Of a stretch of DNA of 64,000 nucleotides, positions 8,619 to 56,100 are shown piece after piece. How positions within the stretch are numbered: position 1 is the first letter of the stretch; each line of letters begins with the position of its first letter. The notes under the pieces were generated by a model, which was not told where the DNA came from, did not search any database, and was given only the letters and a program-made list of their open reading frames with translations. The stretch is from the NCBI GenBank assembly GCA_029953675.1, contig JAMWBK010000007.1, forward strand, positions 124,001 through 188,000, read 5' to 3'. The stretch is from Rhodosorus marinus CCMP1338. Taxonomy: Eukaryota > Plantae > Rhodophyta. The position numbers and the translations under genes are program-made.

Positions 8619-9240
8619 TTATATCTTCTGTACCTTATCAGCCTTTACAACCGGGTTTGCCCGGATAAGTCGCTCCTGTGCGCGCGCCTTCCAATCGAAG
8701 TCGCAGTCGTGCTTGTCGGAATATCGGTGCTCGCCGCAGAACACGTAGCTGCATTGGCACTTGAAGCCGAGGAGCCCAACCTTCCTCCTGCACGCGAAAC
8801 AGCGGGAGGTATTCTTTTGTACACGTTTCGTTGGCGGCTCTTCAACCACCTCTTCCATCTTCTCAACGGAATCCTTCTCCTCTATAGTCCTCTCATCAAT
8901 CACTTCCTGGGCTACGTCAACCCCTACGTCTACTCTCATCTCGGTTTCGGTCGGCTTTTCTACGACGGGAGCTTCCGTAGACACTCTCGGTGAGGCTAAC
9001 AAGTTTTCCCTCTTCTCGTGCTCTCGGAAACATTTTGAGCACATATTGCTAGTAGACGGACTTCTACAAAACACAACGCAAAAACACACCACAGAAAAAA
9101 AAAGTTAGCAAACCAACCAACCACAAGCCAAACCCCCCACGACGCATGACGACCGCAGGCAAAACTTACCCATAAAACCCACACCCATTAGCACAAAGCA
9201 AGGGCACCGCAGCAGAAGAATCCTTATTCATTCCAGACAT
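8619..9240 (-). CDS. A20/AN1 zinc-finger stress-associated protein
   Basis: Exons 9240-9170 and 9063-8619. A20 finger LCANGCGFYGSPSTSNMCSKCF; AN1 finger RCFACRRKVGLLGFKCQCSYVFCGEHRYSDKHDCDFDWK; C-terminus ANPVVKADKVQKI. Confidence 0.95.
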
Positions 9241-12180
9241 CCTTTCCACAAACCAAAAAAAAACAAAAAACACCACCACCACCAACCTCAACTCAAAATA
9301 AAGAAAACCCCAAATAGCCCAAAACTTCTCAAAACTCCTTCCCTCTCCTCCCCTCTCCCCAAAAGTCACCAACCCACTACACACAAACTTATATTTACTC
9401 TCAACGAAACCTCAAGCGGTAACCTACACACACCCTACAAAGCCCCCCCCACGCTGCCCCTCCTTCCTCCTCCCCCTCCCTCCCTCCAAGCCCGACAAAG
9501 CAAATCCCTTCCAACCCATAAAATATATACCTCCCCAAAAAAATCAACACTAGCAACAGCAGTCGTCACTTCAAAAATTTACACAAACTGTCATCCCCCC
9601 CCCCCCTTTTACAAAAACACCCCTAGAAAAACAAATAAAAATTAAAATAAATTCATACAAAATCCTCACTTTTTTGACTTGTTCCCGTTTGTAATTCCTA
9701 CCCCTCCTTCACTCCCCCCTTCTCTTACAACCTTTTTCCCTCCTAATCTTATAGTTTCCACAGTATATCAAATTCTGACATTTTCATTGTACCCTACCCT
9801 CACCCCCCCCTCCCCCCTCTATACTCTTCTTCTCCTCTTCCTTTCATTCTTCTCAATCATGAAGCTGAGCTGGCCTGCTTTTTTTTTTTTTTTTTTGTGT
9901 CCAGGTAACACGTTTTTCCATGCTCTTTTTTTTCTTTTTTGTTGTTTTTATGGAACATGTCATCAAACAATGTAATTCCACCCACCCCCCTTCACAATTT
10001 TAATGTTTTTGGAATGTATCGCCAAACACATTAGCAATGAACAAGCTTCTCCGGATCTCTCCCCTCAGATGCGATGTTGCGATGTTACAATATAGACTAT
10101 TTACAATTTATTTTATATATTTTTGGAGCGATATGAAATCTAGGTTGTTACTTGCTACAGGTGCTGGTTGGGAATTTGTATTCAAATCAATGGCACAGAA
10201 GGGGGGATGGGTAATTGTCGTATGTCAGGAGCAATTATGCAAAGGGAGCTACGTAAGTAAGGAGGGGGTTATCCAAGTCCTGAGGAGCGATTACCCCCCC
10301 TTACATGAAGAGTCTAGAACGCTGTGGAATTTGTGATAATTAATTTAATTATTTGGGATAGATGGGATTCGAAAGAGTTGCGCTGGGGTTTCACGTCTCC
10401 GTTGGTGTATCCCCCCCAACAACCTTACAATTGTGGTAGAAAAGAAACATTCTGCTGACGCTTGGCGTCACCAATCAGGAAAGATTTCGTTTCTTATTTG
10501 TGGCCCGGCTTGACAGGACTAATAACTTTCCTGTATCCTGTAGCCATTTTGCTGTTTTTGAGAACAAAACATTTCTAGTTGATATGGTTGGTTTCTCGGA
10601 AGGGGGGGCAGGGTTGCGATAGATGCATAGCGCCCTCCCGGCCGTCCCGACGAGGGGGTTGAATTTTTGCATTCGAATTGGCTCTCTGGTAGAAGATCCT
10701 TGAAAACTGATCGAATTTCGTATTCTTAATTGGAAAACACGAAAGATCTATTCATCAATATTCACCCCTCTTTTGAAGGATCAAGTCCCGCCCAACTGAA
10801 CTGCGGGACTTCAATCGTACATTTACGATTATTTTTCGCAGATGATAAAAAAATAGGGACGTGAGCTACTCGAGAAGAGGATGTTCTACATTTCATCGAA
10901 ACCAAAAACTCTGTCAATAAATATCCTGCAGACGTGAGCTGCTGTGATACAGACTGAGCTTACCCCCCGTAAAAATAGTCCCACTTGTAGACTAATTTAG
11001 AACATTTTACGACCTCAAATGGCGATTGCACATTCTCTTCAATGTTGAGTAGATTTGGAAGAGTCCCCACGCTTAATCCTCCACCCCCCAACCCCCATCC
11101 CCCCGCCCCCCCGACCCCTGCGCTACCTCAAACTTCGGAAACCCTGGTTGGGACATGTGCGATACAAAGTGAGAGGGGGGTGGGGCGGAGGGTGGAGAGG
11201 AGGGTGGAGAAAGGTCTTACTTTTTTTTGAACAAAAAATATAAATTTTTGTACAATGGAAGATGAGCAAACGATACTCCCAATAAAGGGGTATCATTTGG
11301 TCTGTTGTGAATCTCACCTTGTAACAGAAAAGGGGCGTGAGTGTCTTGCTCTTGAAATCTCCCGATTTCGAGGCTGCTCCAAAAGAAAATGCTCTTTCCC
11401 TTTCAAATTCGAGACTTTGAATCTCATGTGGGGCGTTGTCATATGTACAGAATCTGCTCTCCCTGGCCCGTTAGTAATTTCAACCCCCACCACCACTCCA
11501 TCCCCACCCCCCCTATTATCGACCTTGGAGAACGCATCCACCATGATTTAAGACGAATTCTCTAATTAAGGCACATATCACATCCTGTCTTCCTACAATT
11601 CAATCCATATCGTATAAAAATATTCAAAAGCACTATTCAATCAATGTTCATAAGATCCGATGAGTCTAAATAAAGAGTATATACGTCCTATCGTGATCTT
11701 TTTCCCGTGTCCAACGTGAATCTGTTTTTTGACCAATCCTGAACATCCATCTGTTCCTCGAACTCCTTTTAATACCTATGATTGGATGGAGATGCACCGT
11801 ACTTCTTCTTGGTTGGAGGAATTCTAGGATACAATGATCTGAAACGAAATCGACGCATCAGGAGTGATATCAACGTTCTGTGGTCTGAAACCTCAGTGCG
11901 TATTCCTTCTTCGCAAATATTGAATTAGAATATTTATTGCTCGAAAAGTTAAAAATAGTATTGCTTACATTTCTGACGTCTGATGTATTGGTCAAGGGCG
12001 GGGCCCGAATGCTAAATTTGGCTTTCGGTCAGCTGTAAGCTCGATGGCGAAAGTTGGGAGTGCGAAGCTTGGGGGTTGTAAAGCCGGGCCCGATAGAGGA
12101 GCCCTGACAGGGAAGGTGGATATGACACTTTCGCTCTGGATGGAGGCTTGTAAGGCATGTCATACCCCGGCCTGTGAAAA

Positions 12181-36029: not shown

Positions 36030-39000
36030 AAATTAAAAAAAGGAATTTGTGCAGAATGAGAGGTCTCCGGGTCTTCGTCGCTTCTCATGTGGACGATAGT
36101 GACCCATCAGATCATGAAGACCAAGACCTCGGTCTTGAGTTGGATGATTCGTACGTAAGTTTGTGTCATCACCACGAATCGCACATTTCCTAGAAGATCT
36201 CGCAGATGGTGGTCATGGCTTAAGGTCGGTGGAGGAAACCCTTTGCTCACCGGTCCGATCGAACTGATGCGAGTGAATGAACGGGCTTATTCGGGGGCTA
36301 GAAGAACCACAAGGGAGAAAAGAAAGGCTACTGTAGCCGTGAACCGTGCGCCTCCCGCATCAAAGCAGCATTCTTACGCCATAACAGAAAACTCTACGAG
36401 TAAAATAGCGAGGAGAGCCGATCTGGGCGCTAAAGGGAAAAACATTACCGAAAAAAGAATGGCCAACAGTGACCAACCGAGCGCAGGAAACCGAAGAGCT
36501 CAATGACTAAGGGCCCTTTGCTCCTAGTAGTGAGCGAGGGACTTGAATTGGAATCGCGAAAGTGGCGAGCTTGATCGATTCAGATTTCAGTATCAGTGCG
36601 AGGCGGGTTCATATGTGTTGAGCATCTGAACGTAAGGGCTGAGTGGTAGCTGTAAATTCTACCAGTTCGCAGCCCAATTTCTAGGTTTAAGGGAACGACA
36701 ATGTCAGCTATCAAGATCCCATTGTATCTTTATAGTTTCACAATGAGGATACAGAGAGAATGGCTCGGAGCGGTGCGGGGTCTACCCTTCCGTCCCAGCA
36801 GCCTCTTTGTGCGGATTTTGATATAATGCGATCCAAGGCTTTGGCTTTGGGAGCTCGCCAGTGGGCTTGTCTCCCTTAGGCAGAGCCCCAATACAAACAG
36901 TCGAGGCCAATTGTTTGTGGTACCCTCTTGAGAATTTTGCACTTTTTACGAATTTTAACACTGAAGCTGACTCCATACCTTTAGGCGTGAAGATTCATAT
37001 GAGATGCCCTTCATCCTTTGGAAGCTGTTTCAACTTCCACACCTGTCCGGGAAGCTAGTTCACAGAGGTTTGAAACGCCCCTCGTGTGAATGAGATATCA
37101 ATCCAAACTATGCGCACGCCCCAAACGAGCTACTTGCTCCATCAAGTGCAGCTTGAGTTCAGTCCAACTCCAGCTTCAATATTCGATCCTCTCGAGACGC
37201 TGACTCCGGTGGCAGAGCGCGCTAGATCATTGGTCTAGAAATGTTCAATGAAAAGGGCAACGCAATCATTGGGATAGGGGGGCGATAGCGATGCGGACAG
37301 CGTACCAACCACGACTTCTTGTGAAGAAGAGCTCTCTGAATGATGCTCTGGTCGCACCCCCGAGTTTGGAACGATAGGACAGGAAAGTGTTGTCCAGCTG
37401 CGTAACCCGTGGGGTTGTCGAGGATTGGAACAAATAGCAATCTGCGTCCTCTGTGTGTCCACTCAACGCTCAACCACCCGCACCTAACATGATCCACAAC
37501 GATAAAAGCCTCCCACTCCCATCCAAAAACTCTTATTCAGTGGCCGCTGATCTCTTCGAGTCGGACGTTTCCAACAACCGGCCACAAAATCCTTTCCTCC
37601 GTCGACACTTGGCACGCTATCGTAGCGTGTGACCATTCCGCGAAAGTTTCTTCCAGGGTCTCTTCCAAGTCGAGCAGCGCGTGACGCACACACTCCTAAC
37701 ACATGCCAAGTCCTCGCTCCCCTCCATCCACGAAATGCAATCGCGTTTCAGACTCCCGTTTATTTTCCGTTGACTACAGTTCGGTTTGGCGAGATCGGCT
37801 TTCGATGGATGAATCTTTTGTCCCAATGCCAAGCCATTCAGCGACGGCATGGAAAAAACTTTAGAAGAAAAAGGCTCCTATCGTACTAGCGGGACGCTCG
37901 ACAGACCTGCGCGGCCTACGTAGCAACCCCCCTGTAAACATCAGGGCAGCCGCTTCCGCGGAACATACTTTGGTTTACCAGCAGAAAAACTGAACCCAGA
38001 GCCCACCAACTCTTCATCAGAGCAACGCATCTTGAATTCCTATGATTTGAAGGCATCCTAAGCAGAACATTCGATCTATTAACAGGCCGAGCTCCATAGC
38101 AACTCCGCGTAGCTGCGGAAGGGTGGTTCTCCTCAAATTTGATCCGATCTGTAGGAACCGATCAGCAAGAGCTAACCCGCATTGAACTTGTTCATTCGGC
38201 GAGGGGTTGTTGGAACTGAAGCCGAATTAATGCGACAATATTCTTCTAAAACACAATCTAAATGCTTTACTGCTCGTTGTTAACCCCTCTTTCATCGAGA
38301 CGAACAAAAGTACATTTGTATTCAGATTTTCCCGTGCCAAAACTGTGACTTACAAATGTTCTCAATCCAGCGAAAAATCCATTTCTATATATAGAAATGG
38401 ATAAAAGCGTCGTTTTCTGAGAGAAATTAGACCTGTTTTGGTATTAAGGACTTCTATTGGCTACTTAGTTTTTCAACTATAATTAGATTCCTTGTTTCGG
38501 TGAGAAAAAACCATTTGGGGAAAGTGGAATTTTTTAGTCCTCATTTCTTCGGTTTTTTGGAAAATATTTTGTTGGCCATAAAACACGCCGCCCAATGTTC
38601 TTTTATGGTGTTGATAACACTCACTGGACCAGATGGATGGCGCGCGTTCAGATCAAAGGTTTGGATTGGACTTGCCGGAACGAATCCGAAGAGCAGGAGA
38701 AACGGATAGTGTAAGTATTAATATTTAATTGGTCAATAAATATTATTCTTAAGATAACTATAAGCCATTATCTATTTATATATATTATTCAATATACGCA
38801 TATCCAATCATTTATTGGCACAAAAAAAATCGCGATCTAAAATGTTGTTATCCCGAGGATTTTGGAGCTCAGTTTTTAATGTAAGCCCGTAAAGGTGCGG
38901 GTTTGGCTGGATGGGGGGTTTGCGGTTTTTCTATTCGGAAGAGTTGGACTACTATCGACCCCGTGAAAAGAGAATTATTCGTCGATATATAGAGATAATT

Positions 39001-39961
39001 GTACTGGAATTCATTTTTGCGATGCAGAAGTGGGGTTGAGTTCAGGTCCTTTCAACCACCAGTGACAAAGTGGTGGTAAGGGGTGGGTAAGGGGGTGTTG
39101 TGGTATGGTGTTTACAGGAATGGATGGGGTTGAGATGATTCGTTGGGTGATCGGGGAGGCTCGGCAACAATGCCGTCGTTAAAGCTACAAACGGAGCTGA
39201 GAGTACTGACTCGCTGAATTTTTTTGGGAGGATCGATTAGTTCGGTATTGTGGACCCCCACAGGGTGCTCTTGCGTGCGATCGAGTTTAGCTATTTCGGG
39301 GACGTACAGTCTACTGCCTCGGCTTGAACGAGATTCTATGGAGGCACCGAAAAACCTGTTGGTCCACGTCCCGGTGGATGAACTAACAGTGGCAACGTGC
39401 GGAGCAATAAGTCTGGCTTACGAAGTTGTTTTTCTCAACTTCTTGTCCGTGCGTTTGGATAGCCATAGATTTTTTTTTTTCTAATCCAGGCTCGAGTTCT
39501 CTTGACATGGAATCGTCCTTCCACAATTCCCGCAGTTCAGCTCTCTCAGTCATCAAGGTTCGGCCACTTGGCATCCCAACACAGCGCATGCCAAGTGTAT
39601 GAAGCTCGCTACTGTGGCTTCTATCCGATCGCGCACGAGGGTCGTTTTTTCAGTCGGATTCTTAGAAACTATTATTGTGTCCAATAGAGGGGAGACTTCT
39701 CGGTGACTACAGCGCAAAGTACTCAATTTCCATAACCTCCTGCGGTAGCTGCGAGAAATAAGAATGTCACATTGTTCTTCACTTGTGCAACTTGCCGGAC
39801 AGGTATAAGAGGATGTGGGTGGACGAGGAACAGCGTCTCGGGTTGAAGATGTTACAGGATAACAACAAAGCAGAGCATAGGAGAAGAAAAGAGAAGAGCT
39901 GATTAGACGAGAGAAGAGTTGATAAGAAGAGCTTGTGTTTTCACTTGTTTACTTCTACGAC

Positions 39962-42232
39962 ATGACTGGGGGCCGATTATTTGCAGTTGTGGCGTTGTGC
40001 ATCGCGATATCAAAGGTGAAAGCACATGGATCCATGAAGTTCCCACCGACGAGGCAGTACTACTGTTGGGAGAACCCAAGCCATCCCGCTTGCCCGGGAA
40101 CACAGAGTCCTGTCACTTACAACTGGAACGAAGTTGGTCAGTACTGCGGTGCTGGACCTGACTGCCCTCTCGTACGAGATGGAGAGCTGTGCAGCGGGCA
40201 GAACTGGCACGATGGGGCGAGCTACTACGATGAAGTGAGGGACTACCACCGAACACCCATCAACTTTGGCGCAAACACGTTCCTCTACCACACCACAGCC
40301 GAGCACCTGGGTACCTACGAGGTGTACCTGACCAAAGACTCCGCACCTCTCGATCGGCCACTGAGACATGAAGATCTCGAGCTGGTTTGCACGTACACTT
40401 ACGGTGAAGGAAAGCCGCTGATCAAGGAGTTTCCTTGCAACATCAACGTTGAACGTACTCGCTCGGAGCAAGTGGTATACATCAACTGGAGGACGGCGAT
40501 CACCGCCAACGAGCAGTTCATGGGCTGTGCTGATGTGACTATTGAAGGCAACGCACCAACTCCTACTGAGCCACAAGCGACCGCCACCGCAACTGGACTG
40601 CCGGTCACTACGGAATCACCGGCTCCTGAACCGACGGAGACAGGCCAGCCGCAGTGCGTAGTAGCATGGGAGCAGTGCGGCGGATTGGAGTACTCGGGTC
40701 GCACAGACTGCTGCTCTGGCCTCGTGTGTACTGCCGTTTCGGACTGGTGGCACTCGTGCCAGCCTGACACGACAGCTCCTACACCAACGGAGGAGCCCAG
40801 CGCGACTGAAGCTGTAACAGAAGAGCCGCAATCGACTGCAACCCCAACCCAGGAGCCGCAATCGACTGCAACCCCAACCCAGGAGCCGCAATCGACCGCA
40901 ACCCAAACTCAGGAGCCTCAACCCACCGCAACCAACACCTCTGGCCCGGGTGGCCAGTGCGTCGCGATCTACGATCAGTGCGGCGGCGCTGAATACCAAG
41001 GACCGAACAACTGTTGCGATGGACTTGTCTGTACCTTCATTGGTCCGTACTGGTCCCAATGCAACGTCGACCAAGGACAGACAACGTCTGCACCATCTGT
41101 TCAGCCGACGAACGCACCTTCCCAGGCGCCTACACAAGCACCCGAACCAACCGCGACACCACAACCTTCTCAGACACCGACTGTAAACCCTGTGCCAACC
41201 GTCACTCCGAAACCAGAGCCTACGGCAACCGAAGCTCCAACTACTCCAGCGCCGACTACTCCAGCTCCGACCGGCGAGACTGGGTGGGAGAGATCGATTA
41301 CGCCCAAGGATATTGCCGAGGGTCACCCGTGGGGAATCTCCAACCTCCGAGGAAAGAGCGGTCTCGAAGCAGCCACCATCATCTACCACGACATCGCAAA
41401 TGCCATCAGGAACGGTCCCCCGTCCTTCCAATCCTTCTGCAACACCGCAGACCCGGATACCAACAAGAGGGAGGCAGCCGCTTTCCTGGCCAACGTCCTC
41501 AAGGAGACCGGGGGCTACGGAGCCTTCGTCGAAGTCAGTCCAGTCGGAGAATACTGCACCGCTCTTGGAGGCGTAGACCCGGGAATGGTGGCCGCTGGAA
41601 GCGAGTATCCGTGCTGTGAAGAAGGCTACGGATGTGATTTCCGCGGAAGAGGTGCCATTCAGCTCACCTGGAACATCAACTATGGACGGTTTAGCGAGTT
41701 CTACTACGGAGACAAGAATGTCCTTCTGAGAGAACCAGAGCTGGTGGTCGGGGACGGCGAAGTCGGCTGGGCCGCTTCATTGTGGTTCTGGATGACTCGC
41801 CAGGACTACGGAGGCGCTTGTCCACCAGTCCAGCTCACATCTAGCCAGCCGCTCGGAAACATGTCCTGCCATGAGGCAATGACGCTTGCCGATGGCGGAG
41901 GCTTTGGACAGACGATTCGCATCATCAACGGAGGCTACGAGTCCTGCCCGACTTCAGGCTACAGGTCCAGCCCAATCTACCGGGTCCAGTACTACTTTGA
42001 GCTCACTAGCCTGCTCCAAGTCCCGTCTGCACCAAACTGCGAGTTCAACCAAGACTGCGACGTTTCCGGGATGCAGTTCTACGAGAGCTCCATGGGCCGC
42101 GTCGGGAACGTCCTGATCGGCTCCGATACCTGTGTAAACTGCCAGCGCACCTCGTGCACCAAAGCGCTCGTGACCAAGTGGCTTGGGGTCAACGGTGAAC
42201 CTACGACCAAGTATCAATGGACATGCAACTAA
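39962..42232 (+). CDS. Secreted AA10 LPMO - CBM1 - CBM1 - GH19 chitinase - Cys-rich tail (756 aa, intronless; copy A)
   Basis: Signal peptide ends SKVKA|HGSM, giving N-terminal His; YNWNEV, DGELCS, TTAEH, EQFMGCADV (AA10). Two QCGG..Y.G...CC.GLVC......(H/S)(S/Q)C modules (CBM1); T/P/E/Q linkers. KREAAAFLANVLKETGG, FRGRGAIQLTWNINYG, ASLWFWMT, TIRIINGGYE (GH19). Confidence 0.92.
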   Translation: MTGGRLFAVVALCIAISKVKAHGSMKFPPTRQYYCWENPSHPACPGTQSPVTYNWNEVGQYCGAGPDCPLVRDGELCSGQNWHDGASYYDEVRDYHRTPINFGANTFLYHTTAEHLGTYEVYLTKDSAPLDRPLRHEDLELVCTYTYGEGKPLIKEFPCNINVERTRSEQVVYINWRTAITANEQFMGCADVTIEGNAPTPTEPQATATATGLPVTTESPAPEPTETGQPQCVVAWEQCGGLEYSGRTDCCSGLVCTAVSDWWHSCQPDTTAPTPTEEPSATEAVTEEPQSTATPTQEPQSTATPTQEPQSTATQTQEPQPTATNTSGPGGQCVAIYDQCGGAEYQGPNNCCDGLVCTFIGPYWSQCNVDQGQTTSAPSVQPTNAPSQAPTQAPEPTATPQPSQTPTVNPVPTVTPKPEPTATEAPTTPAPTTPAPTGETGWERSITPKDIAEGHPWGISNLRGKSGLEAATIIYHDIANAIRNGPPSFQSFCNTADPDTNKREAAAFLANVLKETGGYGAFVEVSPVGEYCTALGGVDPGMVAAGSEYPCCEEGYGCDFRGRGAIQLTWNINYGRFSEFYYGDKNVLLREPELVVGDGEVGWAASLWFWMTRQDYGGACPPVQLTSSQPLGNMSCHEAMTLADGGGFGQTIRIINGGYESCPTSGYRSSPIYRVQYYFELTSLLQVPSAPNCEFNQDCDVSGMQFYESSMGRVGNVLIGSDTCVNCQRTSCTKALVTKWLGVNGEPTTKYQWTCN

Positions 42233-42599
42233 GGAGGAACGAAAGTATTTCACTCAACCTGAATACACCTTGCCTGATTCTCGAGTATATCCTTGTCTTG
42301 TCAAATACTCCGAAACCTTTTGTTTCGAGCAAGTGCTTAGAGAAACTTAGATTGCTAATCACCTTTACTTTAAAACGAACCATTATCATTGAGGAAACTT
42401 TCATGCCATCTTCCTCCCGACCTTCAAAACTGGCATCTTGTGAAGGGCGCATCTGAAATCTCCAGCCACCTCCTTACTTGCTTCAGCCAAAACACCTCTA
42501 GCCTCCCCTGGTAACTTGCTCCCTTTCCGAGTCACACCCATTACCGTATTGGTCACGAATAGAAACTGTGCGTAAGCAGGGTGGCCAACCTTAGAAAGG

Positions 42600-43010
42600 A
42601 TCCAACCCCAGTTTCCTCTCCAGACCCAAGGTGTCTGGCCCACATGTTCGTCGACGGGTGCGCTTTAACTGGGTGGCTGCCTGTTTCAAAGTATTCGGCA
42701 CAACACCGTTCAAAGCAACGTTGAAATTCAGCGATTTTTCTTTAAGATGTGAAGATCTGTAGAGTAATGCCAACTGTGAACAACCGAGACTGCCCAGAAG
42801 AGTACGGCCATGCACATATCTAAGACGAAAGCAGGAGCAACTTGTGATCCTTCTCCACCCCGCTAATTCTAGTAAGGACCTTTGCTAGGGTCGGAATCGC
42901 CGTACCCCAAGTGGTCGCGGTAGTAGAGTCGTTCGCTGGCGCTGCTACTGGGCCTCTTAGCAATTCACCTAAGAGGCATCCAATATTCTTTGCTACTTTT
43001 AGTTCTTTCA
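42600..43010 (-). pseudogene. Decayed 3' fragment of LIN9 carried by the segmental duplication
   Basis: LRGPVAAPANDSTTATTWGTAIPTLAKVLTRISGVEKDHKLLLLSS vs LIN9 LRGPVAAPANGSTTATTSSTAIPALAKALVRSSGVEEDQKVLLVSC; broken by stops and indels. Confidence 0.85.
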
Positions 43011-43629
43011 ACTGAACCAGATCTGGTCGCTAATCCGTCTTGTGAGAATCTTGTCCGTTCGTACTCATCAGTGGTGTGTACACAGACCCCAACCCTGACA
43101 GGGAGAAAGCTAGGCTGAACCAAGGGAACGGGCCTGTAAGACTAATGAGACTAATGCCGCATTAGAACCCCACAGTACAAAGCCTAATGAAGAGAGGAAA
43201 CGCTACTGTGTCTCAGCGCGATCGCGAAAACAGCCCCGAAGCCAGGTCGAGCCTGAGCCCTCGGTGAATCCAAAGAGCTCCATAACAAGCGGAACGAACC
43301 AGTGTGACACAGTCGAGGTGCTGACGTTCGTAAGGGCTCCTAGGTACACTACCTCCCTACAGGGGGGGTGGGCGCAAGACGCGGGCAGCAACCGCACCTC
43401 GCAATCAAAGGAGACAAATATCGCGAGGCAGGAGGCCTGTATCCCAAGTCTATACCAAGCATAGACCACAAGTTGCCTAAAGTAGGTTTCTACAAATACA
43501 GTGTCCTACTAGGTGATGCCAGCAAATCCATCGATCCCTAATCTGTCATGTGCATTGCCAATGACCAATTCTGCCGTCACCTCCGGAACCTGACCTGGCG
43601 GGCGTTTCAATACGTCTATACACTGGACT

Positions 43630-44290
43630 TTACTAGCATAGCCTGAAGCGCTACGCAAGGCGTGAAGATGAACTAATAACTAGGGAGGGAAGTATGCAAC
43701 CCCAGGCGCCGATGGCGCGCCTCGGAAAGCATGTCGCTGGAATATCGCCAAAGGGAGACACTTAAACGCCTCAAGAGCGCCAAATATTCAGTAGGATGCT
43801 CAGCAAAACATTTCCGCAACCACTCTAAACCCGACTCATCCACGTGACCAAAGCTTTCCACAATGAATGGCTGGAACCGGTGAGAGCGACCCTCAGCGCA
43901 AGGCAGACTGGCCATGCTCTCAGCATACCGTCGTTCCTTAACTCTTCGAAGGGCTGAAGCCGCGGCCCCCCGGCGGCGGGCGGCTGCGGTGAGGTGGGCG
44001 CTGGCCACGGGGCAGGTAATCGCAAGGTCCACATATGTTGAGCGTCTGGCAGCAGCGTCAGAGACGAGGAGATCGGCTATACAACAGGGCGGTGCAGAGT
44101 CCGAGATTGATCTGGGCAGTTCCGACTCAACCTCAACCGTATGCCCTATCCGAGTCAAAAATTCGCTGAGGATGTACTTGAGGCGAGTGTGACGCCTCGT
44201 ACGGAGACCTCGCAACAGTCCGCAGGAACCCAGGAAGTGGTAGCCACAAGCGTCAATCCGGCTCTCACATCCCTGACAGAAAGACGGCCG
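43630..44290 (-). mobile_element. 5'-truncated non-LTR retrotransposon (CRE/R2-like): zinc knuckle + restriction-like endonuclease
   Basis: CQGCESRIDACGYHFLGSC knuckle, then RH, ADLLVSD...YVDLAITCP...GAAA...KERRY...FQPFIVESFG: the PD-(D/E)xK RLE domain of RLE-type non-LTR elements. No RT domain is present. Confidence 0.8.
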
Positions 44291-44321
44291 ATTAGAGTGC
44301 GTCTATACACTAGGATCGGTT

Positions 44322-44830
44322 GAGGTGGAATCGGAACTGCACTGATCAGCCTCGGCCACAACGCGCCCCCGTTGCATCGCAGATCTCCTGGTATCGGACC
44401 CCGCCGCCAGACGCTCAGCATATGTGGACCTCGCTATCACATGCCTTGCGTCAAGTACCCCCAGCTGCCGCTCCGCTCCCGAAGGGGCAACAGCTTCTAT
44501 ACTTCGCCGACTGAAGGAACGGCGGTATGCTGAGACCATGGCCAGTATCCCCTGTGCAAACGGCCTCTCTTACATGTTCCAGCCTTTCGTTGTGGAAGCT
44601 TTGAGCGAATCATGAAAAGTCCACCTCGGAGCGGCTGAGGAACTGTTGTACTGACAACCCGGTTGAATATCTAGGACCCCTCACGCCGTTTCAGTGTCTT
44701 TCTCTGGCGGTATTCTAGTAGCAAAGCATACTCGCTGAGGCGCGCGCGCAATCGCCGTCTGGGTTTTGCACGTTTTTCTCCCCGAGTTTCTAGTTCCTAG
44801 TGCCTGCCGTAGCGCTTCCCGTTATGCTTT
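44322..44830 (+). mobile_element. Inverted, decayed second copy of the same RLE domain
   Basis: EVESEL..., IADLLVSD, VDLAITCLASS...GATASILRRLKERRYAETMASIPCANG...FQPFVVEA; frameshifted; homology extends into the 3' UTR (cgtagcgcttc...tatgct). Confidence 0.8.
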
Positions 44831-45679
44831 AAGAAATCCATCCATACTTCAGGATGGAAAACCTCAAAACTCCTCGCAAAAACAAGACACTAGAAAAAAA
44901 ACACACCAATTCATAAATATCCAAAAACCATCAACAAAATATCATCACACAAAATCATTGATTTTGATAACAAAAATCCAACATCTAATCTCAACTCTGA
45001 GGCGACCATGAATAATAAATATAAATAGTCCACAAAATTGGAATTGGAAGTAGAATGTCGTGACAAATGTCACGACATTCTATTTACAATTCGTTTTATG
45101 ATAATTTCTAAAATATATGAGTAATAATTTACAAAATTCCATTATTTATTCTCAGTTTTTATTGGCTGAATATTTTTGTTCCTCCAATCATCAGCGATAA
45201 AAATTGATATTGTTTTATGGAAATATATAAGCACAGTTCTTCTCAAATCTATTTTTGCGACTTCCTACCCGTGTATCCGTGCGTACAATTCAACGATATT
45301 CACCGGATATAATTTTAAAAATTAAATATTTACGGAATTTATCCACCCCTTGGAAATAATCACCTCTCCACTAAACCTACAGGCTAATTTTCTCGCTGAT
45401 TTGATTGGTTAAATATAGGATTCTGATTGGATAAGGGAATTTGTTTCTGTTTTATGGTTTTTTTTGTCAGCGAGGAGGAAGATGAGGAGCTGGAGGTTAG
45501 CAACTCCATCCAACATGAGTTATTATGTTGGATTGGAGTTGGTCGGAAGAATTGGTGGAGGTTTTACGGACATAGGGTTAAGCGTCCTACGCAGGGAGTA
45601 ATACGAGATAGGAACGAGGAACAAGAGCGTGCAATCCAAGGTGGCGATAGCGAGCCACGGCTAGCCCGGCTGCCCGCTA

Positions 45680-46030
45680 GAATATCAGCGGGGATTTTTA
45701 CCACTGCCAGTATGAGACGTGGCAAAGAGAATTGAAATATGGGAGGGGCTTTGTCTTCCCCAGGCATTCGTGCTTGAGCTCTAGCTCATCGCCTGGTACC
45801 TCTGGTCCTTGAGTTCTTCGGGTTTATAGATTCCGTTGGTTCTCGTTGGGCTTCGGGAGGTTGTTCCGGGAACGCCCTGACCGTCTCTCCTCGTAGCTTA
45901 CCCTTGCAAGTTTCTTGCTGTGGCGTATGAACGCTGCTTTGATTTTGGAGGCGCGCGATATTCGCCCGCGCATAGCCTATTTTTCCCCTCCGTGTTTTTT
46001 TTTTTCTTCCAGTCTCCGATTAAACAATTT
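45680..46030 (-). repeat. Dispersed non-coding repeat; inverted copy of 51310-51670, partial third copy at 36340-36440
   Basis: Shared cgcgcgcctccaa.atcaaagcagcgttcatacgccacagcaagaaac...gacggtcagggcgttc.cggaacaa...ccagaggtaccaggcgatgagctagagc...cgaatgcctggg. Confidence 0.85.
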
Positions 46031-46304
46031 CGTTCATTCAGAACATCGCGATCGCGCGACACCGAACCGACGTTGGAGGGCAAGACACTTCGCGGGTTGA
46101 TCAGTGAAAACAATTGTACAGCCTCTCCAAGCTTAACTTTTCAAGGTGACCACAGCGGTCTGCAACGAAAGGCTGAAGCCTTTGCGCCCTGCCCCCGGAG
46201 GTAGGAAGAACTAGCTCACGTCTTTCTTTTGAACAGGGCGTTGGTAAGTGTGCTTTCGCACAGTGGAAACGGAGACTTTGGGTGAACATGGTTTGCGGGA
46301 AGCA

Positions 46305-46530
46305 GTGATAGTTTTGGAAGGAGGAGATTAGTTGCGAGAGGTAGTTAATAGTTTTGGAATGAAGATGAGTTAGGGAGATTTAGTTAATAGTTTTGGAATG
46401 AAGAGGAGTTGCGAGAAGTATCGATAGTTTTGGATTGCTGAGACGAAGATGGGTATTGATAGTTTTGGAAGGTGGACGGGAGGGCGATGAGATGCGAGAG
46501 GTATTTGATGGTAATTTGGAAGGGAGGGGG
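46305..46530. repeat. Degenerate minisatellite, ~5-6 units of ~35-45 bp
   Basis: Recurring core atagttttgga, with gagttgcgaga and gaagatg motifs between cores. Confidence 0.75.
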
Positions 46531-47514
46531 TTGAAGATGAATTGCGAAATGGTTTGATGACCTTTTGTTTTTTTTAAATCAGGTTTAATCAGGTTTAGGG
46601 GGTGAAAATGGGCTTTGTAGAGAGGCGTATTTGGTGAATTGGCTGTACGTACGAGATCGGCTCTGTTGAAATGGATTGGGACATGAAGTGTATTTGTGTG
46701 TGCGCAACGCTTGTCTTGGAATGCTGTTCATTTTTTTTGAACTACGCCTGTTCTGGAACGCAACCAACTGAATCATGGTCGCCGGAACAAATTCGGGCAG
46801 TTAGTCGAAGAATACAATTGGATGACTAGGGGTTGGCATGATGAAAAAGTTGACTTCAGTCTCTCACGAAAATCGTGCCTCAGGCCCCAATTGTGGATTT
46901 GTTGGCCATCACCTCTGGGAAGGAGCCACGAAATGAACATGGAGCAGAACAGGAGAATTTAAAGAAAAAAACACACAGAGGCAGTCCAATCGAGATCTCA
47001 GCAAATCGTATGCGACCTGATGTCCAGGCATTCGTTGTATTTGGCAAAAAAGATCGGAAAAGAGAGGTTTAATCAACTCCGTTGCCACCCCGCGACATCA
47101 CTGGATTCCACCTTGGAGCTATCGATGCCAGCACAAAACTATTTCGGTTTCCCTCCCAACAAACTTTCAGTTTTGACCCATGCAACAGTTGCTCCTACCC
47201 AGTCGAGCAGAATATTGACGAAAAGCCGGTGTTCGTTTGCAGTCGCACACCACTTTCGATTCCCCACTTCGACCTTTCGCGCGTTATCCATAAAATCTTA
47301 ACCGACAGATAAGGTGTTTTCTATGTTTTCTGTTAGTGGGCTTGATAAGATCCCTTGTTAGACCAATTAATCGACGCCAGTGTGTCGAGCTTCAGGAAAA
47401 GGTATAAATAGCGTCCAGGTTAGCGCCGGAGATTTTTATGAGACTACTGAGCGTGAGAAAGCAAGAAGACGTTGTCGCTACGATTTTCTTGATGTTGCGG
47501 CAGTTTGAAAAGAA

Positions 47515-48552
47515 ATGGAACTCAGCCGATTGATTGCTATTGTCTTGTTGTTTGGAGTGATATCCAGCGTGAGAGGACATGGGTCACTTCAATACCCACC
47601 GACACGGCAGTACTACTGTTGGGAGAATCCGAGCCACCGAGCGTGTCCAGGAGGGCAGAGCCCACTAACCTACAACTGGAACGAAATTGGTCAGTACTGT
47701 GGTGCTGGTCAGAACTGCCCGATCGTAAATGACGGACAGCTTTGCAGCGGGCAGAACTGGCATGAAGGGGCGAGCTACTACGATGTGATTCGGGACTATC
47801 AGCGTACCCCGATCAACATGGGCGCAAACACTTTCATCTACCACACAACCGCAGAGCACCAGGGCTCCTACGAGGTCTACATTACCAAAGACTCTGCACC
47901 GCTTGATCGACCGCTAAGGCATGATGATCTCGAGCTGGTTTGCACGTACACTTACGGTGAAGGAAAGCCACTGATCAAGGAGTTTCCTTGCAACATCAAC
48001 GTTGAACGTACTCGCTCGGAGCAAGTGGTATACATCAACTGGAGGACGGCGATCACCGCCAACGAGCAGTTCATGGGCTGTGCTGATGTGACTATTGCTA
48101 TTGCTGGGACCAATCCTACCTCTCCTCCGCAGCCAACGGAGGAGCCAGAGTCTTCCGTAGAACCGGAGGCTTCTGAACAACCGAAGACATCCGAAGAACC
48201 GGAGACATCCGAAGAACCTGAGACTTCTGAAGAACCGGAGGCTTCTGAACCCCCTTCTCCTCCACAGTGCGTGGTGGAGTGGGAACAGTGCGGAGGAAGA
48301 CTATACAGAGGCAACAGAGACTGCTGCCCAGGTCTTGTTTGCACTAGAGTGGGAACCTGGTGGCATTCTTGTCAAGTGGGGGAGGTGACCACCGTTCCAC
48401 GCACCGAGCGACCGGAAGAACCGGAAGACGAGTGCATGACGGAATGGGCACAGTGTGGAGGAAGAGGATATTCCAGCAGCTCAACCTGCTGCTCCGGACT
48501 CGTCTGTAAGGTAGTCAGTAGATGGTGGCATTCTTGCCAGCGTATTCTCTGA
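47515..48552 (+). CDS. Secreted AA10 LPMO - CBM1 - CBM1 (345 aa, no GH19; copy B)
   Basis: Signal peptide SSVRG|HGSL; YNWNEI, TTAEH, EQFMGCADV; acidic EEPETS-repeat linker; two CBM1 modules (QCGGRLYRGNRDCCPGLVC...WWHSC and QCGGRGYSSSSTCCSGLVC...WWHSC). Confidence 0.92.
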   Translation: MELSRLIAIVLLFGVISSVRGHGSLQYPPTRQYYCWENPSHRACPGGQSPLTYNWNEIGQYCGAGQNCPIVNDGQLCSGQNWHEGASYYDVIRDYQRTPINMGANTFIYHTTAEHQGSYEVYITKDSAPLDRPLRHDDLELVCTYTYGEGKPLIKEFPCNINVERTRSEQVVYINWRTAITANEQFMGCADVTIAIAGTNPTSPPQPTEEPESSVEPEASEQPKTSEEPETSEEPETSEEPEASEPPSPPQCVVEWEQCGGRLYRGNRDCCPGLVCTRVGTWWHSCQVGEVTTVPRTERPEEPEDECMTEWAQCGGRGYSSSSTCCSGLVCKVVSRWWHSCQRIL

Positions 48553-50129
48553 GTGACTTGGCACCGCAAAATACAAGTTGAGCACGGAAAAGGCTGGCTG
48601 AGTGATTACAACCTTTCTCTTCAGGAACGAGTCTGAACACCCTCATGGCGAGGAACTCGAGCGCTGTTCCGCTGGACGTCAATGCCTTTTAGGCCGCGAT
48701 CAGTAGCTACTATAGGATCATCTTTTCTCTAGGATTGAGCCAAGAGAAAGACTTCGATAGATATTTCAGGTTCCGTAGTCGACCGAAGGACGGTAATAAG
48801 ACACATTCTGGCTATGCTAGTAAAACTACCATCCTGACTTTCACTGTACACACTACTTCTTCGCCAGCTTATCACTACTCAAGCTACCGGAAGTTGCCGG
48901 ACTGAGCTGTAACTGATGGTGTCCAGAAACCGCCAACCACTTCCGTGTCTGTCAAGGAGCACGAGGAATTAGAGGCAGGGCAGAAAGGAGAGACGGCTGT
49001 AGCTCAAAACTATAATCGCAATGGAACACCAAAGGTACTCGTCTCGAGCGTATCCGCAAACTTTTTGTCAAGGCAATCATTTCTGCAATCGCTTCATGTC
49101 CAATGGACTCGGTACCCCCAACGAATCATGGAAATTCAAAGAGCGGAGTAGAAAAGCTCCAGGCGCGCTTTCAACCCTTGAGAAAATCACGGTCTTGCCA
49201 GTGCGATCCTGCGGCGATGCTTTTTAGGTCCCGATGCATATAGGCCGAGATCGGCGCCATGACTTTCGTTCTCTAGAAAGTGAATCCAGCCATTGGACTG
49301 AACTCAGGTTACGTTAGTTCGTTTCCAGATTGCGAGCGCCTAGAGCAGAGTTGGAATGGCATTCGTAGCAAATCTCCGCTGTCACTATAGCTGCAGCCAA
49401 TCTAGCAGACCTGCACCGTTCAGTACATTCATCCGAATGACCGCTGGCAAAGATTCCATCCTAAAACATGGTAGCAACCCTTGCGCACTGTCCAGCTAGG
49501 CGAAAGGGAGGGGTTCAGCGCTTTTCAAATGTTCAGCTCAATGGAAACCACGGACAGTGGCGTTAAAGAACGCTAAGGCAAGAGGAGTGTGTAAGAAGCC
49601 CCCTCAGCGGGGTAGCATACTAGATCCAAAGGGAAAACTACTGCATGGAGACGACAGCTTCGGTCCAAGAGTACCTCAGCCCTCTGCGAATTGCGTTTTC
49701 TAGGCATGGTACTGTGTGAAGAGGAATTCTGTCGAAGTAGTTTTAGCACTAGCAAGTTCCTTCCTCCCGTGCCCGAACGACTCAAGAGACACGGCAGCCA
49801 AGCACTACCGAGTTGGGACACCGAATTGGGACACAGAATTGGGGAGCCCTCGAATCTCGGAAGGGAAAAACTCCGCCAAACATTTGGAAACCTCACGATA
49901 ACTCAGCCCAGACAATCGTTCGCAAGAGGAACAAAGGTTGTGTTCCGGCACAGAAACGCGGCGAGCGCTGGGCAGAGACTCTGCATGGATGCTTTTTTTG
50001 ACGAATCAGAGTTGGAACACAAAACTTGCGTTCAGTGTTCGCTTGAGGCCGTCCATAACAATCACAAGCACGGGGCGTCCTTGAATAACTGAAAATGATC
50101 TGCGGCATTCTGCTTGAGATTCGGGCATA

Positions 50130-53100: not shown

Positions 53101-56100
53101 TTGATAAGAAGAGCTTGTGTTTTGGTTGTCTGCTCCTACGACATGACTGGGGGCCGCCTATTTGCAATTGTGGCGTTGTGCGTCGCGATATCAAAGGTGA
53201 AAGCACATGGATCCATGAAGTTCCCACCGACGAGGCAGTACTACTGTTGGGAGAACCCAAGCCATCCCGCTTGCCCGGGAACACAGAGTCCTGTCACTTA
53301 CAACTGGAACGAAGTTGGTCAGTACTGCGGTGCTGGACCTGACTGCCCTCTCGTACGAGATGGAGAGCTGTGCAGCGGGCAGAACTGGCACGATGGGGCG
53401 AGCTACTACGATGAAGTGAGGGACTACCACCGAACCCCCATCAACTTTGGCGCAAACACGTTCCTCTACCACACCACAGCCGAGCACCTGGGTATCTACG
53501 AGGTATACCTGACCAAAGACTCCGCACCTCTCGATCGGCCACTAAGACATGAAGATCTCGAGCTGGTTTGCACGTACACTTACGGTGAAGGAAAGCCACT
53601 GATCAAGGAGTTTCCTTGCAACATCAACGTTGAACGTACTCGCTCGGAGCAAGTGGTATACATCAACTGGAGGACGGCGATCACCGCCAACGAGCAGTTC
53701 ATGGGCTGTGCTGATGTGACTATTGAAGGCAACGCACCAACTCCTACTGAGCCACAAGCGACCGCCACCGCAACTGGACTGCCGGTCACTACGGAATCAC
53801 CGGCTCCTGAACCGACGGAGACAGGCCAGCCGCAGTGCGTAGTAGCATGGGAGCAGTGCGGCGGATTGGAGTACTCGGGTCGCACAGACTGCTGCTCTGG
53901 CCTCGTGTGTACTGCCGTTTCGGACTGGTGGCACTCGTGCCAGCCTGACACGACAGCTCCTACACCAACGGAGGAGCCCAGCGCGACTGAAGCTGTAACA
54001 GAAGAGCCGCAATCGACTGCAACCCCAACCCAGGAGCCGCAATCGACCGCAACCCAAACTCAGGAGCCTCAACCCACCGCAACCAACACCTCTGGCCCGG
54101 GTGGCCAGTGCGTCGCGATCTACGATCAGTGCGGCGGCGCTGAATACCAAGGACCGAACAACTGTTGCGATGGACTTGTCTGTACCTTCATTGGTCCGTA
54201 CTGGTCCCAATGCAACGTCGACCAAGGACAGACAACGTCTGCACCATCTGTTCAGCCGACGAACGCACCTTCCCAGGCGCCTACACAAGCACCCGAACCA
54301 ACCGCGACACCACAACCTTCTCAGACACCGACTGTAAACCCTGTGCCAACCGTCACTCCGAAACCAGAGCCTACGGCAACCAAGCTCCAACTACTCCAGC
54401 GCCGACTACTCCAGCTCCGACCGGCGAGACTGGGTGGGAGAGATCGATTACGCCCAAGGATATTGCCGAGGGTCACCCGTGGGGAATCTCCAACCTCCGA
54501 GGAAAGAGCGGTCTCGAAGCAGCCACCATCATCTACCACGACATCGCAAATGCCATCAGGAACGGTCCCCCGTCCTTCCAATCCTTCTGCAACACCGCAG
54601 ACCCGGATACCAACAAGAGGGAGGCAGCCGCTTTCCTGGCCAACGTCCTCAAGGAGACCGGGGGCTACGGAGCCTTCGTCGAAGTCAGTCCAGTCGGAGA
54701 ATACTGCACCGCTCTTGGAGGCGTAGACCCGGGAATGGTGGCCGCTGGAAGCGAGTATCCGTGCTGTGAAGAAGGCTACGGATGTGATTTCCGCGGAAGA
54801 GGTGCCATTCAGCTCACCTGGAACATCAACTACGGACGGTTTAGCGAGTTCTACTACGGAGACAAGAATGTCCTTCTGAGAGAACCAGAGCTGGTGGTCG
54901 GGGACGGCGAAGTCGGCTGGGCCGCTTCATTGTGGTTCTGGATGACTCGCCAGGACTACGGAGGCGCTTGTCCACCAGTCCAGCTCACATCTAGCCAGCC
55001 GCTCGGAAACATGTCCTGCCATGAGGCAATGACGCTTGCCGATGGCGGAGGCTTTGGACAGACGATTCGCATCATCAACGGAGGCTACGAGTCCTGCCCG
55101 ACTTCAGGCTACAGGTCCAGCCCAATCTACCGGGTCCAGTACTACTTTGAGCTTACTAGCCTGCTCCAAGTCCCGTCTGCACCAAACTGCGAGCTCAACC
55201 AAGACTGCGACGTTTCCGGGATGCAGTTCTACGAGAGCTCCATGGGCCGCGTCGGGAACGTCCTGATCGGCTCCGACACCTGTGTAAACTGCCAGCGCAC
55301 CTCGTGCACCAAAGAGCTCGTGACCAAGTGGCTTGGGGTCAACGGTGAACCTACGACCAAGTATCAATGGACATGCAACTAAGGAGGAACGAAAGTATTT
55401 CACTCAACCTGAATACACCTTGCCCGATTCTCGAGTATATCCTTGTCTTGTCAAATACTCCGAAACCTTTTGTTTCGAGCAAGTGCTTAGAGAAACTTAG
55501 ATTGCTAATCACCTTTACTTTAAAACGAACCATTATCATTGAGGAAACTTTCATGCCATCTTCCTCCCGACCTTCAAAACTGGCATCTTGTGAAGGGCGC
55601 ATCTGAAATCTCCAGCCACCTCCTTACTTGCTTCAGCCAAAACACATCTAGCCTCCCCTGGTAACTTGCTCCCTTTCCGAGTCACACCCACTACCGTATT
55701 GGTCACGAATAGAAACTGTGCGTAAGCAGGGTGGCCAACCTTAGAAAGGATCCAACCCCAGTTACCTCTCCACAGCAAGGTGCCTGTCCCACATGTAATC
55801 ACGTTCGTTGACGGTTTCGTTGAACTGGGTGGCTGCCTGTTTCAAAATGTTGAGCGCAACACCGTTCGAAGACGCGTTGAAACCCAGCGAGTCCACCAAA
55901 GCGTTAAGATCTGTCGGGTAATGCCAACTGTGAACAACCGATGCTGCCCGGAAGAGTACGGCCATGCACTTCTCCACGCACGAGACCAGCAGCACCTTTT
56001 GATCCTCCTCTACCCCGCTACTTCTAACAAGGGCCTTTGCTAGGGCCGGAATTGCCGTACTCGAAGTTGTCGCGGTCGTAGAGCCGTTCGCTGGCGCTGC

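Follow-up and report, generated by a model that had tools for sequence, protein, structure and literature searches.

Clustered genes for predicted secreted AA10–CBM1–CBM1(–GH19) proteins in the red microalga Rhodosorus marinus

We describe an array of three related genes in a 64,000-nucleotide stretch of the genome of the red alga Rhodosorus marinus CCMP1338 (positions 124,001 to 188,000 of contig JAMWBK010000007.1, assembly GCA_029953675.1). The whole stretch is referred to as the window, and coordinates are counted from its first nucleotide. Gene 1 (39962..42232, + strand) is an intact, intronless open reading frame (ORF) of 756 amino acids (P0006) that joins, in this order, a signal peptide, a lytic polysaccharide monooxygenase (LPMO) domain of family AA10, a linker, a CBM1 module, a repeat linker, a second CBM1 module, a further linker, a GH19 domain and a Cys-rich tail. 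We read its product as a secreted, self-targeting enzyme that would use a single polypeptide for a twofold attack on crystalline chitin, most likely in extracellular defence against chitin-walled parasites or epibionts such as fungi and chytrids, and we assign this reading a probability of about 0.65. The fusion of an LPMO to a glycosidase is an already known theme; the eukaryotic AA10-CBM1-CBM1-GH19 version appears to be new and is probably chitinolytic. To our knowledge, eukaryotic AA10 LPMOs are very few. Both the ORF listing and tblastn place three paralogs on the same strand where an initial annotation of the window had put them: gene 1, gene 2 (47515..48552, +) and gene 3 (53143..55382, +). 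The domains which that annotation had assigned to gene 1 all score above the curated Pfam thresholds (LPMO_10, CBM_1, Glyco_hydro_19), and the Cys-rich tail is likewise present at the C-terminus.

The oxidative half of the protein is defined by its copper site. The hydrophobic leader MTGGRLFAVVALCIAISKVKA (aa 1-21, read by eye from the sequence; 39962..40024, +) ends in ...SKVKA and is followed by HGS, and its predicted cleavage leaves His22 as mature residue 1. This histidine, directly after the protein's own leader, is invariant in 13 of 13 aligned relatives. The AA10 domain (40025..40537, +; aa 22-192, delimited by Pfam, PDB matches and invariant columns) reaches 86.1 bits in gene 1, 92.4 in gene 2 and 85.0 in gene 3 against an LPMO_10 cutoff of 23. 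Within the domain, the columns H22, A113, H115 (in the motif TTAEH), E184 and F186 are invariant in the 13 aligned sequences. When mapped onto ScLPMO10D (following PMC10067821), H22 corresponds to His34, H115 to His134, A113 to Ala132, F186 to Phe205, E184 to Glu203, and the pair N56/T112 to Asn76/Thr131. The complete histidine brace formed by His1 after cleavage and the TTAEH histidine, as well as the Phe in EQF, had been proposed in the initial annotation and are both borne out. The conserved Glu had been sought in the motif WNE (E57); this residue is not kept within the clade, and the functional, second-sphere gatekeeper is instead the Glu of N-E-Q-F, E184, which is separated from F186 by one residue in the same way as Glu203 from Phe205 in ScLPMO10D. 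The polar Asn/Thr pair marks a chitin-active AA10 subclade, the cellulose-active ScLPMO10C having Phe/Trp instead (PMC10067821). N56 and T112 are present in genes 1-3; the N56 position is occupied by A or M in P0137, P0139 and P0142, three relatives discussed below.

Ranked by PDB sequence search, the solved structures closest to the AA10 domain are the fern protein Tma12 (6if7, E = 1.9e-16), ScLPMO10D (7zjb, 2.6e-14) and CbpD (7sqx/8c5n), followed by ScLPMO10C (4oy7). A resemblance to Tma12 and CbpD had been noted before; both are indeed among the best matches, Tma12 being the first, and the likeness to Tma12 is one of PDB sequence search alone. The algal domains also have extra Cys pairs, namely C35/C44 and pairs in the C62/C68 and C142/C159 regions.

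The two CBM1 modules that follow were recognized by Pfam and by their Cys/aromatic pattern. Module 1 (40655..40759, +; aa 232-266) has the form CVVAWEQCGG...DWWHSC and module 2 (40958..41062, +; aa 333-367) the form CVAIYDQCGG...PYWSQC. Each of the proteins carries two such modules, with CBM_1 scores of 43-50 bits (43.5 bits in gene 1) against a cutoff of 20.6, and the predicted pair therefore stands. The pattern C..W/Y..QCGG....CC...C....(W/Y)W.(S/Q)C comprises a four-Cys framework and three surface aromatics. CBM1 modules have long been known in red algae, since the description of a Porphyra wall protein, and they are wall-associated in Porphyra and in oomycetes. Between the two modules lies a tandem repeat (40823..40933, +; TRF and alignments) with a 30-bp unit that encodes the 10 residues EPQSTATPTQ and is present in 3.7 copies. 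Compared to gene 1, gene 3 has one unit fewer and the transcript P0001 two units fewer.

The hydrolytic half is a GH19 catalytic domain (41300..42037, +), with its core from approximately aa 447 and a Pfam match over aa 481-692 (Glyco_hydro_19, 85.2 bits against a cutoff of 25.5). Sequence search of the PDB returned 32 GH19 matches, the best at 6e-23. An AlphaFold2 (AF2) model of aa 447-756 has a pLDDT of 79.9 and a pTM of 0.85, and the top Foldseek matches to this model are all GH19 (probability 1.00, TM up to 0.81). Both catalytic Glu residues of the initial annotation are retained: E515 (KETGG, general acid) and E524 (FVEV, general base) are invariant in 14 clade members together with the motif GRGAIQLTWNINYG. 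All three line up with catalytic positions in GH19 chitinases of known structure, and GRGAIQLTWNINYG fits the substrate motif (S/T)WN.NYG. Going by sequence, the domain may also have peptidoglycan (lysozyme) activity. The Cys-rich tail (42038..42229, +; aa 693-756) contains 6 conserved Cys and a KWLG motif. It is kept in P0017-P0024, P0002 and P0003 and always accompanies this GH19 subtype. The tail has zero Pfam matches, and the PDB search with the GH19 model gave nothing beyond GH19; modelled alone it reaches a pLDDT of 52, which is unusable, and within the GH19 model its values range from 50 to 83.

That the fusion is transcribed as one unit is supported by a complete MMETSP transcript (P0001, 736 aa) with 89% identity to gene 1; the two are collinear over their entire length, initiator Met through final residue. 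The sole gap between the two corresponds to two of the 10-aa linker repeats. A related strain hence produces the fusion as a single mRNA, and gene 1 is correctly modelled without introns.

From these features a mechanism can be proposed. Removal of the signal peptide, as predicted from the sequence, would expose His22 as the N-terminus, whose amino group and side chain would hold one copper ion together with His115 in the histidine brace. A113 and F186 would shape the copper site, and E184 would act as the gatekeeper. In the presence of either O2 or H2O2, and of a reducing agent, the AA10 domain is expected to introduce oxidative chain breaks on the crystal surface, most likely in chitin and at C1; we infer this preference because the protein has the Asn/Thr pair of the ScLPMO10D/Tma12 subclade and not the Phe/Trp of ScLPMO10C. 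The two CBM1 modules, on flexible and probably glycosylated linkers rich in Pro, Thr, Glu and Gln, would hold the enzyme on the insoluble polymer, and the GH19 domain would then hydrolyse the loosened chains with inversion, E515 serving as the general acid and E524 as the general base. Gene 2 would supply the oxidative and binding half alone. A single chain with an LPMO and a GH19 domain offers a ready-made test of intramolecular synergy between tethered oxidative and hydrolytic chitin enzymes, and the fusion is a candidate compact chitin-degrading catalyst.

Several known systems share parts of this design. The algal AA10 domains have in common with ScLPMO10D and Tma12 the histidine brace, the Ala/Phe copper site, the gatekeeper Glu two residues before Phe and, in genes 1-3, the Asn/Thr pair; moreover, Tma12 is a eukaryotic AA10 protein with a proposed defence role, as the algal proteins are eukaryotic. 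The algal AA10s differ from both in grouping as a well-supported clade of their own, in sharing only about one residue in three with them, in having the extra Cys pairs and in lacking a cell-wall sorting signal. Tma12 is also a single-domain protein, whereas the Rhodosorus AA10 is fused to two CBM1 modules and GH19. In the bacterial AA10-GH18 and AA10-GH5 enzymes, too, the oxidative domain and the hydrolase are parts of a single secreted polypeptide and are separated by binding modules. The hydrolase partners named for AA10 are GH5 and GH18, not GH19 (PMC10067821). Rhodosorus differs from the bacterial LPMO-glycosidases in the GH19 partner (inverting, with a lysozyme-like fold), in the eukaryote-type CBM1 and in the algal host. 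A third group comprises the plant class I/IV chitinases (CBM18-GH19) and the GH19 arrays of Pythium. These are secreted enzymes that combine a binding module with GH19 and are directed at chitin-walled organisms, they have the same GH19 fold and Glu pair, and their families expand by tandem duplication; mycoparasitic oomycetes (Pythium) use tandem-duplicated GH19 arrays against chitinous prey. The plant and Pythium proteins, however, have no LPMO, the plant binding module is of the hevein type, and the GH19 of Rhodosorus falls into a distinct clade of protist sequences in which the tail is conserved.

It is on the analogy with the plant GH19 proteins and the arrays of mycoparasitic oomycetes, together with the duplication and conversion dynamics of the cluster, that we favour defence. 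As a purpose for the enzyme, scavenging of nitrogen from marine chitin is nearly as plausible. The secreted proteins would then free chito-oligomers or N-acetylglucosamine (GlcNAc) from moults, diatom fibres or fungal debris as a source of nitrogen and carbon, by the same molecular mechanism. The domain and catalytic-residue evidence fits this account equally, and the closest GH19-plus-tail relatives are of environmental or marine type, including the osmotrophic or phagotrophic Abeoforma whisleri (P0030). We nevertheless consider it clearly the less probable explanation of the array: no genes for GlcNAc uptake or catabolism are found in the window, no genome-wide look for them having been made, and arrays that change rapidly through duplication and conversion more often consist of conflict genes. 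In either case, defence or nitrogen capture, the array points to an unstudied extracellular interaction between a red microalga and chitin.

Remodelling of the alga's own wall or matrix, with AA10 and CBM1 acting on its cellulose or another glycan and a GH19 that is non-catalytic or acts on a substrate other than chitin, appears less plausible than defence or scavenging given the intact GH19 catalytic machinery, and we regard it as improbable. The wall association of CBM1 proteins in Porphyra and oomycetes would agree with it, as would the cellulose activity of some related AA10s and the purifying selection on gene 2, which is maintained without a GH19 domain. Yet the GH19 Glu pair and substrate motif are strictly conserved, and the surroundings of the copper site are like those of the chitin-active subclade. 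The only GH19 substrates we know of are chitin, chitosan and those of the peptidoglycan type, which also counts against a role in remodelling.

Some observations weigh against a chitin-directed defence enzyme. CBM1 modules are best known for binding cellulose, and the relatives ScLPMO10B and ScLPMO10C are cellulose-active, so that chitin is no more than the likely substrate of the AA10 domain. Position 56 varies among the algal sequences, as noted above. The transcript is from a related strain, and for CCMP1338 itself we infer both expression and enzyme activity. This analysis gave no sign of Rhodosorus meeting chitinous enemies or taking up GlcNAc, and one of the two GH19-bearing copies is frameshifted as assembled.

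We next consider where the family comes from. In an exhaustive HMMER search of 1.84 billion protein cluster representatives with the AA10 domain, four matches fall below 1e-30: the Rhodosorus/MMETSP cluster, the MMETSP transcript P0137 (56% identity), the environmental sequence P0138 from a sequencing-run assembly (55%), and P0139 (44%), which is KAA8498190.1 of Porphyridium purpureum, annotated as 'Chitin-binding protein CbpD'. Matches beyond these four have at most 39% identity, with E-values around 1e-17. A scan of 185,579 prokaryotic genomes has Actinomycetota at its top (Micromonospora, Nonomuraea, Streptosporangium and Streptomyces, 29-36% identity). In a neighbour-joining tree of 105 AA10 domains, the five algal-type sequences, from Rhodosorus, Porphyridium and two further eukaryote-type sources, group together in 57 of 60 bootstraps (95%). 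With respect to subclade A2, the algal AA10s form a clade of their own, at most 38% identical to any bacterial sequence, in a tree built without reference subclade sequences. Two of the eukaryote-type AA10s, P0138 and P0142, are from adjacent runs of one study (SRR25569779 and SRR25569775), and P0142 is encoded next to a trypsin-like gene, the contig being 5 kb long.

The initial annotation had called the genes horizontally acquired and had suggested an AA10 phylogeny. The tree, once built, places the algal-type sequences in their own clade, and the claim of acquisition falls as far as a recent transfer is concerned. A recent acquisition from bacteria followed by local amplification would draw on the overwhelmingly bacterial distribution of AA10, the lack of introns, and the fact that the nearest prokaryotic relatives are Actinomycetota, a source also proposed for Tma12 (PMC10067821). 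It is nonetheless unlikely: the best bacterial identity overall is 29-38%, compared to 44-56% among the members of a eukaryotic clade to which a second class of red algae belongs, the nearest relatives of CBM1 and of the GH19-plus-tail are eukaryotic and not bacterial, and composition is native-like both in overall GC and in GC at third codon positions (GC3), the latter being 0.56-0.70 in the LPMO genes and 0.51-0.65 in their neighbours, with overlapping ranges. We rejected recent transfer on bacterial identity of at most 38%, clade support, native GC3 and the Porphyridium homolog. Judged by these comparisons, the family is native to early-branching red microalgae and not a recent bacterial import; at best, any transfer would be ancient, before the split of Stylonematophyceae and Porphyridiophyceae.

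The combination of AA10 with GH19 is rare. Among the best 150 AA10 matches, it is found in the representative of the Rhodosorus cluster, P0001, and in P0137, and in none of the 148 others. The Pfam architecture of P0137 (LPMO_10, two CBM_1, Glyco_hydro_19) is identical to that of gene 1. However, its GH19 is of a classical plant-like type (263 bits in Pfam), is 30% identical to the Rhodosorus GH19 and lacks the Cys-rich tail, and the difference in type implies that the hydrolase module was swapped or independently fused. The environmental eukaryotic sequences P0002 and P0003 have a different, longer AA10, two Cys/Trp-rich modules and a GH19-plus-tail. For the GH19-plus-tail subtype itself we find approximately 16 relatives at 42-64% identity, followed by a gap to bacterial GH19s at 32-41%; all of these relatives are short environmental or transcriptome contigs or belong to the ichthyosporean Abeoforma whisleri (P0030). 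Three combinations can thus be distinguished: the algal AA10 with two CBM1 and a tailed GH19 (Rhodosorus), the same AA10 with two CBM1 and a classical GH19 (P0137), and a long, divergent AA10 with the Cys/Trp module and a tailed GH19 (P0002 and P0003).

A possible fourth combination is found in Porphyridium. KAA8498190.1 is the closest named AA10 homolog and belongs to the same clade; like the Rhodosorus genes it is intronless, nuclear and multi-modular, but three Cys/Trp-rich modules replace CBM1, and it is single-copy at its locus, unlike the Rhodosorus array. Its C-terminal approximately 380 residues (~540-918) contain GH19-like motifs in order (..KET.., GRGIIQT..NFG, W.AGLFYWL, IVNRG). As a GH19 domain this region is recognized neither by Pfam nor by phmmer against the PDB, and hhalign gives a probability of 22%, over the GRG..Q motif only. 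The Cys/Trp-rich module of approximately 40 residues (C-x2-C-x-G-C-[WL]-W ... C-Y-x-W ... C ... Y-x-W-C) occurs in P0002, P0003, P0020, P0021 and P0139 and is without a Pfam family. Standing at the position of CBM1, it appears to be undescribed and is a candidate new carbohydrate-binding module.

AA10 and GH19 thus seem to have been joined repeatedly, or shuffled, in marine eukaryotes, and the architecture is rare and not unique to this genome. The earlier statement that no algal AA10-CBM1-CBM1-GH19 protein is known holds insofar as we found no paper describing one; the same architecture is present in P0137. Nor did we find a paper that mentions AA10 together with Rhodosorus, or one of relevance that connects LPMOs to Porphyridium or to red algae. 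Recent AA10 phylogenies contain no algal sequence, and Tma12 is called the only plant AA10 (including PMC10067821). As the fusion recurs with different partner modules in P0137, P0002 and P0003, it can be argued that the linkage itself is selected. We tentatively suggest, as a proposal with rather less than even odds, that marine algae and protists invented covalent AA10-GH19 coupling more than once, that it is specific to eukaryotes, and that the AA10s of red algae constitute an ancient eukaryotic subfamily in its own right, set apart by its disulfide pattern. If true, the range of substrates and the synergy between LPMO and hydrolase within one molecule could be unlike those of any bacterial enzyme characterised to date.

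Gene 2 is an intact ORF of 345 aa that consists of a signal peptide, an AA10 domain (47578-48090, +; Pfam LPMO_10), an acidic linker of 18-bp repeats (48148-48249, +; TRF), two CBM1 modules (48268-48372 and 48433-48537, +; Pfam CBM_1) and a stop codon. With LPMO_10 and two CBM_1 only, it is the GH19-less third paralog that had been predicted, and a tblastn search with gene 1 found neither a GH19 remnant 3' of gene 2 nor further copies anywhere in the window. The AA10 domains of genes 1 and 2 differ by a nonsynonymous divergence (dN) of 0.11 and a synonymous divergence (dS) of 0.61; this ratio of 0.19 points to purifying selection on the family, as does the comparison of gene 1 with gene 3, where 9 substitutions are synonymous and 5 are not. 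In the public annotation gene 2 is given as a 270-aa product with zero Pfam matches, yet 47515-48552 reads through without interruption and encodes all three domains.

Gene 3 is a copy of gene 1 that starts with the ATG at 53143 (DNA alignment and ORF listing). The two are 99.4% identical, with 14 substitutions in 2240 nt (9 synonymous, 5 non-synonymous). A 30-bp in-frame deletion has removed one linker repeat (repeat tract 54004-54084), and a 1-bp deletion after 54381 (gene 1 position 41231), between the second CBM1 and GH19, puts GH19 and tail out of frame, so that the ORF listing shows two overlapping ORFs. The near-identical second copy of the initial annotation is therefore present as DNA, but its reading frame is broken as assembled. 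The public model (KAJ8903157.1, NDN08_004268, 702 aa) jumps from '...CDGLVCTFI' to 'DTDCKPCANRH...' in the second frame; it masks the frameshift by an invented intron and loses the end of the second CBM1. Gene 3 is either a young pseudogene or an unpolished error of the Nanopore assembly. The assembly was made from Nanopore reads with NextDenovo and polished by Pilon with 100-bp reads, and the deletion may be a Nanopore error because such reads cannot be placed uniquely in a 2.9-kb duplicate with 99.4% identity. We note that the public gene models are misleading at this locus: the intron invented for gene 3 masks a frameshift, and the model of gene 2 cuts short an ORF that is intact.

Self-BLAST shows that genes 1 and 3 lie in two units of a segmental duplication of approximately 6 kb: unit A (36987..42956) holds gene 1, and unit B (50154..56111) holds gene 3 and abuts an intact DIRP/LIN9-like gene. 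The flanks of the units are 83-93% identical, whereas a core of approximately 2.9 kb (~39700-42590 versus ~52880-55740) is 99.4% identical, synonymous sites included, which is a signature of recent gene conversion. Unit A carries a disrupted duplicate of the DIRP gene's 3' end (42657..42972, - strand), which corresponds to aa 231-335 of ORF 55762-56817 in three frame-broken pieces (tblastn, 59-71% amino acid identity). Since the intact DIRP gene adjoins unit B and unit A carries only the broken end, B represents the parental arrangement. A second conversion tract connects gene 1 (40382..40544, +) with gene 2 (47935-48097), with 1 mismatch in 163 nt; it is also common to gene 3, and outside of it the AA10 coding sequences of genes 1 and 2 are approximately 78-83% identical. 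The proposed local amplification can accordingly be resolved into a segmental duplication and an older AA10-CBM1-CBM1 paralog, gene 2. Judged from these alignments, the cluster evolves by segmental duplication, gene conversion and slippage of linker repeats.

The 756-aa protein of gene 1 has an exact match in NCBI, with Rhodosorus marinus GCA_029953675.1 as its source, and the array is embedded in a contig of 2.21 Mb. Genes for Ycf48/HCF136, a rhomboid protease and a mitochondrial carrier flank it on one side and the DIRP/LIN9-like gene on the other; a DnaJ/TPR protein and an A20/AN1 zinc-finger protein are further neighbours in the window. These are ordinary genes of a photosynthetic eukaryote, and the array lies in genuine red-algal nuclear DNA, which the initial annotation had surmised and which the native composition agrees with. 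An artefact, be it contaminant DNA or a mis-assembly that produced a false array, is hardly credible and was discarded: the assembly is Nanopore-based and the copies are 99.4% identical across 2.9 kb, but the contig has eukaryotic neighbours on both sides of the array, the duplicate flanks, being only 83-93% identical, mark the copies as separate loci, and a full-length mRNA exists in an independent transcriptome.

The remaining observations concern the surroundings of the array. A scan of the window with Rfam gave zero RNA families. The spacers between the genes contain diverged pieces of one repeated ORF family on both strands (43128-44609, 45697-46208 and 51377-51884). Its prototype is the ORF 43673-44215 (- strand, 180 aa), and another ORF lies at 51456-51884; both have zero Pfam matches, and the family may be a transposon remnant. 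Finally, the 2-kb bin at 8001-10000 of the window has a strongly negative GC skew (-0.34) and holds the ORF of the A20/AN1 zinc-finger protein (8619-9092, - strand).

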